Positions 1-35,766 of a stretch of DNA of 64,000 bases are shown one piece after another (positions within the stretch are counted from its first letter, which is position 1; each line of letters starts with the position of its first letter). This DNA comes from Perkinsus chesapeaki ATCC PRA-425. Its lineage: Eukaryota; Protista; Perkinsozoa. The stretch is from positions 40,425-104,424 of the forward strand of contig JAAPAO010000047.1 in the NCBI GenBank assembly GCA_013115145.1. Reading direction: 5' to 3'. Under the pieces are notes generated by a model that was not told where the DNA came from, made no database searches, and was given only the letters and a program-made list of their open reading frames with translations. Both the position numbers and the translations under genes were made by a program.

Positions 1-1122
1 AGTGTCTTGGAGGAAAGTTGGTATTACCGAAATCGCAGACTTTAACTTGGCAGTCAGAGTTCAAAAGGATATTAGATGGTTTAATGTCTCTATGTAGCAT
101 CTGCCCAGTATGCATATACTTCAGAGCTCTCAGTAATTGATATACGATGTATCTTCCCAACGGTTAAGCTGCCATCTCTCCATCCAACGACCCAGGTTCT
201 ATTCCCAGTACTACTGTTTATGTATATCCTCCAATATATTAGCTCGTATAACAGCATGCAGATCGCTTTCCATATAGTCACATACGATATATATGTCCTG
301 ATCGTTGTCGGCCTTCAACACGTTCAAAAGCCTACAATAGCCAACGACCGTTCCGTTCTTCCATCTCCCCAAACCTTTCTCACCCACCTAATTATGTTTT
401 CATGACCGTTGAGCTCTTGAAGGAACATGATCTCTCTGAAGGTCCTCTGGGCATCTGGGTAATACAGTAAATGGTCAAGTTGAAATAATTGACTTAAAAA
501 GACTTGTAAAGGTGTTTTGGAAGGAGAACGTAATATGCAGTGAGATAACTCAACTGGGACACACTTTAAATTATTTAAAGAGTCATTGAGTTGTAAAAGT
601 TCATATGTAAAGGACAGAGCCTAATGAGATTCTATCCCAGAATCCACTTGTGTTCATATCATAGTTTCATTGCTCTAAATGGACCAGACATCAATTTCAT
701 CAGCTATACTCTCCAAAACACACTCAGCGATAACGTTTGGATAGACCTAGTAATCGTCGCGAGAGGTAAATGCCAAGGTCGAGGCCCGAGACGAATTCAA
801 GAGCTTCCAGGCAACCCTTTGTGGTGGCAGATATCGCCATACAGATGCGGTTTGATAATCCTCCTGAGGGCCCTGTTACCCACCTGTAGCGTTCTGGAAG
901 GCATCAAAGCACTTCTTAAGAGCTACCACTTCCCTTGTACCTGTAAGGACTTTCACTGTTCGTTGGATAGACGACTAACGTTTTTCAATTGCCTTCCAAA
1001 CGATACCGTAGGCGCCTCGTCCGAGCTTCTGAACAATCTCATACCTATTTAATTGATGATAAGTAGCGAAGAGGAGGAGAGGGTTACTTCCTCAAAACAT
1101 GACGATCTATCTCTTCGGTCAT
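1..1122 (-). CDS. MAPK15: Mitogen-activated protein kinase ERK7/MAPK15 (multi-exon, 5' part; runs off the left edge)
   Basis: Spliced minus-strand exons read [12 protein letters not shown]|[22 protein letters not shown]|..[17 protein letters not shown]|[23 protein letters not shown]|[36 protein letters not shown]|[22 protein letters not shown]. This is the ERK7/8-type N-lobe, with GT-AG introns. ATG at 1122-1120. Confidence 0.93.
153..214 (+). pseudogene. tRNA(Gln/Glu)-like remnant forming most of an ERK7 intron (antisense to the host gene)
   Basis: Plus strand aacggttaag..CT-CTC-CA-TCCAA-CGAC-CCAGG-TTCTATT-CCCAG gives D-loop-like, anticodon-loop-like, 4-nt variable loop and T-arm spacing. 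It lies inside a 62-nt GT-AG intron on the minus strand. Confidence 0.55.
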
Positions 1123-1496
1123 TCTGATATATCAAGAGATCGATCAGAAGATGAAAATAATGTAAAGAAAAGAACGAAAGATGCGCTGTTGAAACGTCAC
1201 GCGCCACAAAACTCGAAAACTGGCACGTTTCGGGAAAGAAACTCAATTGAATAGAGGTGAGTATCCATGCTCCATTACTCCCCTTTTTTAATGCTTTTTC
1301 GGCCTGATTGCTGTTAAGTATTATGCCTTCTGCCCCATGTTATGCTTACCAAAGCAAGTATTGTGTTTAATAGTAGAGAGTTGGGATCAGTTAAATACGC
1401 ATGGTTAATGATTTTTAGAGGGTATTCCCGCGGAATTATCAGAGTCCCTGAGGAATCTTCGGACGGTCTTTCCCGGAGCTAGTTGATATTATCAAA

Positions 1497-33100: not shown

Positions 33101-35766
33101 TTAAACAAGCGAATGCTCGATTCAACCCTGGAGCCACTTACGAGGTAAATCGAAAGCGGCCTAGAGAGTTGCCACAGTAGGCTGAATGCTTATTAGTTGA
33201 CTTTCAACGACGATGCTATCATAGAGGAATCGACAGACTCAGTGGAGATTCCGAGGATAGTATACAAGTGATAGGGAGGCGATGAGGGTGGGAATAGATA
33301 TGGCTTGTTTAGGATATCTAAGATTGCAACTATACAGGACAGGAATCCGGATGAATTTGTCGATCTATGTGGTATTGTTACCCACTGTTCGCCAGTGTCC
33401 ATGGTAATAGAGATGGGCTTTATGGGTTGGGAGACTTTTATTCCAATTGGAGCTTCCGTGCTGGCATGCATCTTTCCGTTGTCTCGCACAAACGCTATTT
33501 GAGATACGTGCGCGATTGTGGCCCCTTGCAGTAAGGTAGGCGAAAAAAGCGAGGAAGTACTGCATGCCGCTACGCAGAGATTCTGTCGTATATTAGCATG
33601 TACAGTAAATGGTGTTTTATTGATTAGGTGACAATAAGGAATTCTGGTAATGAAAGAGCTAGGCGTAACTTCACTATAGCCGATGATAGTGGATGCTCTA
33701 TAGAGATGACCGTCTGGGGAGATATGTAATACAGTGGGGCTCGAAACAAATCGGGGACCATCGGAGTTTCGCTGGCCGAACGTACGCCTGTTCTGAATGC
33801 TCTTTTTTGTATGATCTGAAGTAGTGACGATGTTTGAGTAACGTGGCTCATGTAAATTAAATTTAGTTGTAATTGGCACGCACAATATTCAGTGGTAAAT
33901 GGAAGATTCATCTTGTCCCTTTGTGTCAGGGCGCAGAATTGCGGTGTGGACGAGAACAGGGCGCAGTACCATCCTGTTGTGATGATCAAAAATGTAATAC
34001 ATACAGCGCTTCGCTCCGCTAGACTATCTCGTTTCCCCAGGCCAGGATTGGCAGCTATGGTGGTAGAAGTCTCTCTGCGGTTGGAAACACTAGAATCGAA
34101 GTCGACCCGGATGACTCTAGGGCTTTTGAGGTGAAGAACTGGTGGATGCAAACTGGCCAGGGAGGTAATGGTATTCTCCCATCCTTGGACAACTCGGTGT
34201 GCTGCGTTAGGTGCTGTACAAGCATTATCTACTGGAGGTGGAGGAGGGGGAGGCAATGCTCCAGTATCGGTCATTGAGTAAGGTGCAGTGGGCCTTGGCG
34301 AGCCAGTATATTATATCAGCTGATATTATCACCTATAAGTTTTACCTGCAGCAGTACTCCATCATCATGATCACTTCATCATCTGTCAAACGTGTATGCT
34401 TAATCTTGAGTGCAACATTTTACTGGACTGTGGGAAATAATGGGTCTTAATCTTAGAAAGCAGTGTCAAGTGGTAAATGTAGGAAACTTGTAGTGATGTA
34501 ATTGTCAGATAGTAATATGTATGTGCTATAAGAGCGTGTAGTGGTGTGTAGTTGGAAGCAAAACTCTCTTCGTCAAAGCGTCTCTATTTTGCCCTGCCTG
34601 TCTTGGGCGAACCTACGACTCTCGCCAAAAGAACAAAGAATCCGCGAGAGAGGCGGCCCATGTGCTGTTGTGGTATATTGTGTTTGATAATTGTTTTGGC
34701 TTTTTCAGAGTTATGCGGATGGATAACAACCTTTTCCTGGCCTTGTCGGGTCAGTCGGATGTTCCCAATGCTCGTCCAGTAAACACTCACACTTTACAGC
34801 GAGCTACTGTCTCTCAGATCTTCAAAACTGGAGATAGGGTAAGGTTATAATTGCGGCTTTATGGCAGCTCTTCTCAGCCGCTGTACTATACGAGTTGCAT
34901 TTCTGAGATTCAAGACGGACGAGGAGGAATGCGTAAATGTAGCAAGAAGGTTGAAAATGATCCAACCACAGGGATATGGTCATGTAAGTTGAAGGCTCTC
35001 GCGCCCCGCTGGTATTAGTACCAATAGATGTATCCACAACTTAGCCGGATGGACCTACTGTGGGCCTCTAGGCGAGGAATATTTCGCAGGAGTTGGGGGA
35101 CACTTATGCTGATGAGAGTTCTAAAAGTCAACAGGGACTCGGTGGATTTTCTATAAATTTTGCCGGCATGTTAAGGTTGATATAGTCCAACTCGGGAGTA
35201 GCGTCTGTAATACTTTCCCTCACTACAGGGGATGTTAGACACTGTATAATATATGCGATTGATCTCAGGTATAGATGGTCACCAAAATCAACAGTGCATG
35301 CCACGCTATATTATCAATCTCAAACTCGCCGATATGTCAGGTTAGTGGGCATGTAGGATATATGAAAGTCATTTCTATTATATTTTAGGTGAGGTACTTG
35401 TTCGAGCATTCGATGAGCAAGCCCAGGCTCTCCTTGGGGTGGGGTTGGTCTGCTTGGCTTAACTCTCATCAGTTATCGTTCCCCAGGTGTCAGCGCAGGA
35501 GATGATGCAAAATATGGGGGAGGAGGATATTGAACAAGTTATTATCCGTGCTCAATTTAAGAAAATTAATGTGAGTTTCGATGTTGCCTCGAAGGGGGAG
35601 GATGAGCGAGGTTGAAATTGAATCTGAGTAGGCGCGTGTGAGGTCGAAGAAGGAGGTCTACACTGATGAGGAGCGGGTGAACGTATCGCTTACTGATTTT
35701 ACAGCGATAACCGATCAGAACCTGCAGCAGGATGCGCAACAAATGATGCAACTTATTAATACGTGA
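30128..35766 (+). CDS. RPA1: Replication protein A large subunit (RPA70), multi-exon
   Basis: N-terminal OB ([19 protein letters not shown]), a Q/G/N-rich linker, [79 protein letters not shown], and DBD-C Zn motif (LYYTSC..KCSKKV..WSC) with [11 protein letters not shown]. Stop at 35764-35766. Confidence 0.92.
30372..30483. mobile_element. 112-bp MITE-like insertion in the first RPA1 intron
   Basis: Perfect 29-bp terminal inverted repeats (CACGGGTGGCCGCAGTCGGGGCTGAGGTG at 30372-30400; reverse complement at 30455-30483), flanked on both sides by TATT (candidate 4-bp TSD). Confidence 0.75.
30488..30531. repeat. 22-bp tandem duplication (GTATTGAAAGAAATATGATACA x2) next to the MITE
   Basis: Two exact consecutive copies, read directly from the sequence. 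Confidence 0.9.

Follow-up and report, generated by a model that had tools for sequence, protein, structure and literature searches.

Six stretches corresponding to the 3' ends of tRNA genes were identified in a 64,000-nt region of the Perkinsus chesapeaki genome (contig JAAPAO010000047.1 of assembly GCA_013115145.1, positions 40,425 to 104,424; hereafter the window), where they lie in the short introns of ERK7, WDR70, an LRR gene and GCSH (intron 2), in the 391-nt intron 1 of GCSH and in the 5' flank of GCSH. Four of these six elements were found to be retained at orthologous sites in Perkinsus marinus, Perkinsus olseni or both. On balance, we favour the reading that they are old tRNA-gene (tDNA) relics in which selection acts on the B box, with TFIIIC binding its most plausible role as judged from the nucleotide sequence.

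Motif scanning returned four exact matches to the B box GGTTCGANYCC in the window, against 0.15 expected, and none of 100 shuffles reached four. Using the wider B-box/T-loop consensus GGTTCRANYCC (G53, T54, T55, C56, A58, C61), four exact and two one-mismatch matches were obtained (Table 1). These pieces are not tRNA genes by any standard detector. ARAGORN identified no tRNA gene in the window, nor in the 13-14 Perkinsus loci fetched for comparison, and the isotype names given to the pieces in an earlier, sequence-only reading are thus unverified. Rfam gave no match in the window at gathering thresholds, with the tRNA model giving none even at E<=10. A sequence-only tail model (R1) was built from 14 elements of the three species; it recovers exactly the six window elements at 20-25 bits, matches that follow by construction. 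The next match of R1 (17634-17650, E 0.15) lies within a 544-aa exon, which is 100% identical to P. chesapeaki protein FOL47_007748, and was taken as chance.

Several candidates were rejected. Conserved coding exons contain the one-mismatch B boxes at 8860 and 31253, which were regarded as chance matches; a tblastx conservation map, serving as a proxy for exons, was used solely to judge these two, given that its high-scoring segment pairs swallow conserved intronic elements. A match on P. marinus locus L004 (position 18848, GGTTCAAACCC) was likewise set aside as chance, being within a conserved exon. An ab initio gene finder of our own (codon log-odds and splice matrices with dynamic programming) was dropped, as it either under-called introns or returned more than 1000 of them.

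The 14 elements were aligned in tRNA register and found to span approximately tRNA positions 44-73, namely the variable loop, T arm and 3' acceptor strand. A variable-loop/T-stem consensus of AGAGGnCCCnGG is followed by the T loop and about 11 bases representing the 3' strand of the T stem, the 3' strand of the acceptor stem and the discriminator. In most copies a T-run then begins at about position 74, 11 nt after C62 (for example CGGCTACGGTG-TTTTT and CACGGACCACG-TTTTT), with T75 nearly invariant. No encoded CCA was found in any of the aligned elements. As the T-run at position 74 corresponds to the terminator of a tRNA gene and CCA is lacking, the source was genic DNA and not mature tRNA, and the elements are relics of tRNA-gene tails. 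The A box and D arm are absent from the short-intron copies, with a D-loop-like trace seen only in 29249-29320. No element folds better than shuffled sequences (z -0.6 to +0.95), and complementarity of the T stem is mostly lost. Flanks on the acceptor side differ from locus to locus, indicating that the copies are not one young repeat family; the sequence-only reading had held that they do not belong to a single family of short interspersed elements (SINEs), and this stands. Both orientations occur, inside introns and in the one 5' flank, with sense copies present in the LRR gene, in GCSH intron 1 and in a P. marinus DEAD-box gene.

A rich genic source for such relics is plausible. For five types of tRNA gene, P. 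marinus is reported to have over 500 copies, together with Dada transposons that insert into tRNA genes (PMC3706591), and repeated intergenic tRNA pseudogenes were identified on its locus L004. The latter are near-complete, with a D arm (GCTCAGTTGGTAGAGC), a T arm and TTTTT, and their tails closely resemble the GCSH 5'-flank element. As a separate observation on this locus (GG678666.1), three intergenic repeat units are present (5011-5208, 6062-6269 and 9120-9327), each with two tRNA-like tails about 170 nt apart, one being the near-complete tRNA pseudogene, uncalled by ARAGORN. The unit junction (..GCAGCTCAG..) is reminiscent of TAGCTC, the target of Dada transposons.

Table 1. Introns, tRNA-gene tail elements and B boxes in the window, with the basis for each.
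Feature	Position in window	Strand	Basis or remark
Exact B box	27515	+	GGTTCGANYCC
Exact B box	28792	-	GGTTCGANYCC
Exact B box	29294	+	GGTTCGANYCC
Exact B box	29543	-	GGTTCGANYCC
One-mismatch B box, ERK7 intron	195	+	Motif scan
One-mismatch B box, WDR70 intron	7285	-	Motif scan
ERK7 intron, 62 nt, GTAGTA...GAAG	153..214	-	Conserved reading frame restored
ERK7 tail element	186..219	+	Antisense to gene; B box GGTTCTATTCC with one change (G57T); 21.3 bits with R1
WDR70 intron, 49 nt	7267..7315	+	Frame continues across; orthologues with intron at same position
WDR70 tail element	7269..7306	-	Antisense to gene; B box GGTTCGATCCG
LRR-gene intron, 59 nt	27506..27564	+	Restored conserved frame; orthologous introns at same position
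LRR tail element	27506..27540	+	Sense; exact B box GGTTCGAATCC
GCSH 5'-flank tail element	28776..28814	-	Exact B box, R1; antisense to GCSH
GCSH intron 1, 391 nt	29050..29440	+	RNA contigs, 3 runs
GCSH intron 1 pseudogene remnant	29249..29320	+	Sense; exact B box
GCSH intron 2, 46 nt	29528..29573	+	GT..AG skip in 3 RNA runs
GCSH intron 2 tail element	29530..29563	-	Antisense to gene; exact B box GGTTCGATCCC
GCSH intron 3, 129 nt	29694..29822	+	RNA contigs, 3 runs
Candidate intron, 46 nt, with weak antisense B-box-like core AGTTCAATCCA	1586..1631	+	R1 6.9 bits, E 0.82

The sequence-only reading had described the introns of ERK7, WDR70, LRR and GCSH as consisting largely of tRNA-like sequence, and both their coordinates and their status as introns were confirmed, with removal of GCSH intron 2 visible in RNA. 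Excision of the ERK7 intron restores the reading frame ...ILEDIHK/Q/YIVYQLL..., and the residues flanking the LRR intron (...SYLIYLE/EIYLHN...) are conserved in P. olseni and P. marinus. Two further pieces that had been reported at 29250-29320 and 28776-28832 were also borne out. The first lies inside the RNA-confirmed GCSH intron 1 and is a tRNA-like pseudogene remnant with a 6-bp acceptor-like closing stem and a TTTATTTTTT run, the fold of which is no better than that of shuffles. The second is located some 40 nt before the GCSH start codon (ATG at 28844), and its exact B box (GGTTCGATCCC) is followed by 11 nt and TTTTT.

Two weaker pieces fared less well. The core at 1586-1631 has all six key positions, its counterpart in P. 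olseni is not clearly conserved, and it is borderline and unproven as an element. The piece at 33726-33760 was rejected, as it carries one mismatch, has no R1 match and is situated in an apparent RPA1 intron of about 200 nt, of which the P. marinus counterpart (44 nt) is without the motif; R1 identified nothing elsewhere in 30-64 kb.

The evidence for selection comes from orthologous sites. The WDR70 element is kept in the orthologous intron of all three species in the same orientation, namely GGATCGAACCC in P. chesapeaki, GGATTCGAACTT in P. marinus (L005, 17650-17687) and GGGGATCGAACCC in P. olseni (L015, 5405-5432, E 6e-5). The ERK7 element is shared by P. chesapeaki and P. marinus, the latter having it in an intron of 45 nt (AGTTCGATTCC), again in the same orientation. 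The elements of GCSH intron 2 and of the GCSH 5' flank are common to P. chesapeaki and three P. olseni assemblies. In P. olseni the intron 2 element (GGTTCAATCCC) lies in an intron of 79 nt, and that of the 5' flank (GGTTCGATTCC) is at the equivalent place, 56 nt before the ATG, with orientation kept in both. The P. marinus counterpart of GCSH introns 1-2 falls in an assembly gap. P. chesapeaki and P. marinus agree at 5/25 four-fold degenerate sites, which amounts to saturation, P. chesapeaki and P. olseni agree at 32/62, and the interiors of neighbouring introns essentially cannot be aligned (optimised alignments give identities of about 35-45%). For a given strand of an intron of about 60 nt, the probability that a match with no more than one mismatch arises from background is approximately 0.0085. 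Given this background and the saturation of four-fold sites, the four retentions cannot be due to chance.

The positions that are conserved point to the B box. C50, G53, T54, T55, C56, A58 and C61 are invariant in 14/14 aligned elements, with C62 nearly so, and the variable positions of the B-box region are 52, 57, 59, 60 and 62. Those invariant positions that fall within 52-62 are the universally conserved positions of the T loop and B box. In ungapped comparisons of orthologues, conservation was found only at positions 44-62, falling on the acceptor side, with none at 32-43.

These results bear on the possibility that the elements are neutral debris, i.e. scattered fragments of tRNA genes or pseudogenes, in a genus with hundreds of tRNA genes and with transposons that target them, which survive only where they are harmless (introns, flanks) and simply decay. 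The abundance of tRNA genes and Dada insertions in P. marinus would supply such fragments, the L004 pseudogenes are repeated intergenic examples, and presence or absence is lineage-specific at three orthologous introns. We nevertheless consider this explanation unlikely. Key positions are intact, in the same orientation and at orthologous sites, between species with only 20% four-fold identity (P. chesapeaki and P. marinus), at least four retentions in seven comparisons would have a probability of about 1e-6 under neutrality, and slower change at B-box sites than at flanking intron sites is indicated for four loci.

The age and genic origin of the elements are also at odds with the mechanism of intron gain put forward in the sequence-only reading. 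There it was suggested that mature tRNA 3' halves, produced by a cut in the anticodon loop and either reverse-transcribed or captured during repair, were inserted antisense into exons, where the complement of C32-U33 would provide the AG of a new intron of about 45 nt. The geometry that led to this suggestion is real for the two cleanest introns of P. chesapeaki: assuming a five-base variable loop, the 3' splice sites of WDR70 and GCSH intron 2 fall exactly at tRNA-equivalent position 32, and their 5' splice sites 4-7 nt beyond position 73. The weak case at 1586-1631 has its 3' splice site at 33, 5' splice sites abut position 73 within 0-7 nt, and independent intragenic elements are antisense more often than sense (5 vs 3). 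However, positions 32-43 are neither conserved nor demonstrably derived from tRNA, so that the description of these introns as tRNA positions 32-73 with a short head stands as geometry and is unsupported as homology. The 3' splice site is not fixed at position 32 either, being at 37 in P. marinus WDR70, about 20 in P. olseni WDR70, 33 in P. olseni GCSH and 30 in P. marinus ERK7, and far beyond these positions in P. chesapeaki ERK7.

Further results do not fit the capture of tRNA halves. The lack of CCA and the T-run at position 74 argue against mature tRNA as the source, and neither a consistent 5' end at 32-34 nor signs of recent insertion, as expected of a class of retro-copied 3' halves, were found. 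Elements and introns are not recent gains but predate the splits of species with saturated four-fold sites. Antisense insertion is not the rule, in view of the sense copies (LRR, GCSH intron 1) and the non-intronic copy in the GCSH 5' flank. Flanking target-site duplications are absent but for a 7/8 repeat at GCSH intron 2 (GTAATGTC / GTATTGTC), and this candidate was rejected as it is not kept in P. olseni. Finally, a diverged GCV_H paralogue of P. olseni (L006-L008) has all three GCSH intron positions and no B box, which implies that the intron position is older than the element or independent of it. This paralogue was also observed to adjoin a further, second E2 gene, and its surroundings (RCC1, IFT57, UbiA) are different. 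The tRNA-half route of intron gain is therefore not supported, and we regard it as very improbable for these introns.

Under the favoured reading of retained B-box sites, 3' ends of tRNA genes (approximately positions 44-73, usually with the terminator of RNA polymerase III (Pol III)) would have been left in introns and in one 5' flank of protein-coding genes. The foldable tRNA would then have been lost, with purifying selection keeping a core of about 19 nt around the B box (A44 G45 .. C48. C50 .. G53 T54 T55 C56. A58 .. C61 C62), probably from a time that precedes the divergence of P. chesapeaki, P. marinus and P. olseni. Invariant B-box positions, the lack of an RNA fold, the occurrence of both orientations and the presence of intronic as well as non-intronic copies together suggest a motif that is bound by protein at the DNA level. 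The core may accordingly act as double-stranded DNA, a putative docking site for TFIIIC, which is the known B-box-binding factor, comparable to extra-TFIIIC (ETC) sites, of which the effect could be chromatin or boundary organisation, or residual Pol III activity. An isolated B box conserved among relatives is characteristic of ETC sites, and the elements described here are retained in two to three Perkinsus species. The short introns are close to minimal length and would consist of a 5' splice site, the element and the stretch holding the branch point and 3' splice site, so that an intron appears to be made of tRNA. Near-minimal introns that keep a site of 19-30 nt will have a near-constant layout, which is a simpler account of that layout than the capture of tRNA halves.

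A stronger version of this reading appears possible but doubtful, namely that decayed tRNA-gene tails have been turned genome-wide into selection-maintained, intron-embedded sites for TFIIIC or another B-box binder, shaping and possibly seeding a sizeable class of minimal introns.

Residual Pol III activity could also be taken further, with B box and terminator still acting as transcription units that yield short, selected tRNA-like RNAs from introns. B box and T-run do stand at the spacing seen in tRNA genes. Such units appear improbable, as the short-intron copies are without an A box, there is no conserved RNA fold, acceptor-side sequence is not conserved between orthologues, and no RNA contigs cover the elements in RNA data that consist of small assemblies.

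A number of observations weigh against the reading of B boxes retained for TFIIIC. Binding by TFIIIC, and any function, are inferred from the motif. The B-box excess, measured against window-wide expectation and shuffles, applies to the window as a whole. The conserved stretch reaches 5' of the classical B box, to positions 44-50; TFIIIC binding might account for this extension, or might not. Turnover was found at three loci. Only P. chesapeaki has an intact LRR element, the orthologous introns of P. olseni (about 200 nt) and P. marinus (about 156 nt) having decayed traces of the motif only. The element of GCSH intron 1 is specific to P. chesapeaki, with the P. olseni intron measuring 134 nt and lacking it. 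A DUF6740-gene intron holds an element in P. olseni, the corresponding intron of P. chesapeaki being 46 nt long and free of it. Constraint does not extend to every copy, and the pattern is one of long-term maintenance plus turnover. Moreover, each of the four conserved elements runs antisense to its host gene, and neither of the two sense elements (LRR, GCSH intron 1) shows conservation, a pattern that, small numbers notwithstanding, hints at an RNA-level role specific to one strand.

Such a role could be that the antisense copy (..GGAUCGAACC..) aids splicing of minimal introns, or spliced-leader trans-splicing in the case of the 5' flank; it might, for instance, serve as branch site or help to define the intron, and this role would be the one conserved. 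From the end of the antisense B box to the 3' splice site downstream, the distance is 15-22 nt in all cases but two, namely 42 nt in P. chesapeaki ERK7 and 32 nt in P. olseni WDR70. The B box of P. chesapeaki ERK7 is mutated, and this intron has a CTTAAC nearer to its 3' splice site. AGs are also found 12-29 nt downstream of the GCSH 5'-flank element. We consider this role rather unlikely, since the distance in P. olseni WDR70 does not fit, sense copies exist, and the positions that never vary belong to the B box. UCGAAC fits the branch consensus yUnAy / UACUAAC poorly, and the core TTCGAA is palindromic, which makes an antisense reading unnecessary.

The left half of the window contains, in order, ERK7 (minus strand), the WD-repeat gene WDR70, EamA, two DUF6740 genes, AP2/E2, E2, LRR, GCSH and RPA1. 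This order is syntenic with P. olseni loci L002, L003, L011, L012, L014 and L015 and with P. marinus loci L004, L005 and L009. The gene of the ubiquitin-conjugating enzyme E2 is present as tandem, near-identical copies on the minus strand (21451-21738 and 22475-22762), a duplication also found in P. marinus and P. olseni, and its protein is 100% identical to the P. marinus E2 across the aligned part. For GCSH, RNA assemblies of the same organism contain a second transcript form (window 28913-29901) that is approximately 88-90% identical and has introns at the same three positions. This form may represent either a recent paralogue or an allele that has diverged, which would be in keeping with a polyploid or heterozygous genome. 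The region of the GCSH transit peptide in P. olseni (L012, about 3365-3310, corresponding to window 28940-28950) has an extra intron of 54 nt (GTAAGCCCC...CTGCAG) without tRNA-like content. This intron is absent from P. chesapeaki and represents an intron presence/absence difference between the species.

A near-perfect hairpin (inverted repeat) of 108 nt was identified at 30374-30481. Its match to MIR2118_2 scores 48.8 bits, below the gathering threshold of 120, and is due to chance. Depth in the DNA run is about 540 over the hairpin against 57, and several other contigs start or stop inside it. It is a high-copy palindromic repeat, possibly similar to a miniature inverted-repeat transposable element.

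If the B boxes are bound, isolated TFIIIC sites would occur at high density inside transcribed Perkinsus genes, and constraint at the DNA level could dictate nearly the whole sequence of a minimal intron. Intron-embedded TFIIIC sites, if true, would be a previously undescribed link between the Pol III promoter machinery and intron architecture, bearing on two open questions: the role of extra-TFIIIC sites and the source of intron sequence. The constraint is directly testable, as P. marinus is culturable and transfectable. With regard to tRNA halves the sequence-only reading is corrected, in that these are old gene-derived relics and provide no evidence for a new route of intron gain. In a full-text literature search, no paper was found in which tRNA genes, B boxes or TFIIIC are connected with the introns of Perkinsus.

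Among known systems, ETC sites are the closest in kind. They are described as binding TFIIIC without recruiting Pol III and as acting as chromatin boundaries (PMC3395662). Like the ETC sites of yeasts and mammals, the Perkinsus elements have a stand-alone B box, no functional tRNA gene and conservation among related species; unlike them, they are recognisable tRNA-gene tails with a terminator, lie mostly in very short introns that they largely fill and are known here from sequence. SINEs possess a tRNA-like 5' head with A and B boxes, a body and a tail that is A-rich or of the long interspersed element type. The Perkinsus elements share with tRNA-derived SINEs a tRNA-related sequence with an internal Pol III promoter that is dispersed in genes, but represent the 3' third of a tRNA only, with the T-run following at once and no common body.

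A recurrent sequence composing introns of unrelated genes is also seen in the introners of Micromonas, Aureococcus, dinoflagellates and the alveolate relative Amoebophrya (PMC11282704, PMC7789003). Introners, however, are recent and lineage-specific, and belong to families in which the copies resemble one another and bear terminal or direct repeats. The elements described here have only about 19-30 nt in common, their flanks differ, and neither terminal inverted repeats nor target-site duplications were seen by inspection; four of the six in the window are shared between species, one of them in all three, and other contigs of the DNA run match only cores of 24-40 nt. The introner literature thus describes a different kind of element. 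Lastly, Dada insertions split P. marinus tRNA genes at TAGCTC (PMC3706591). The tRNA pseudogenes and Dada flanks of that species resemble the Perkinsus elements as a genic source of tRNA fragments within the genus, with the L004 tails matching the intronic elements. The window elements have neither Dada sequence nor a TAGCTC junction, and the intronic copies differ from Dada flanks in being much shorter and, as the orthologous comparisons indicate, selectively maintained.

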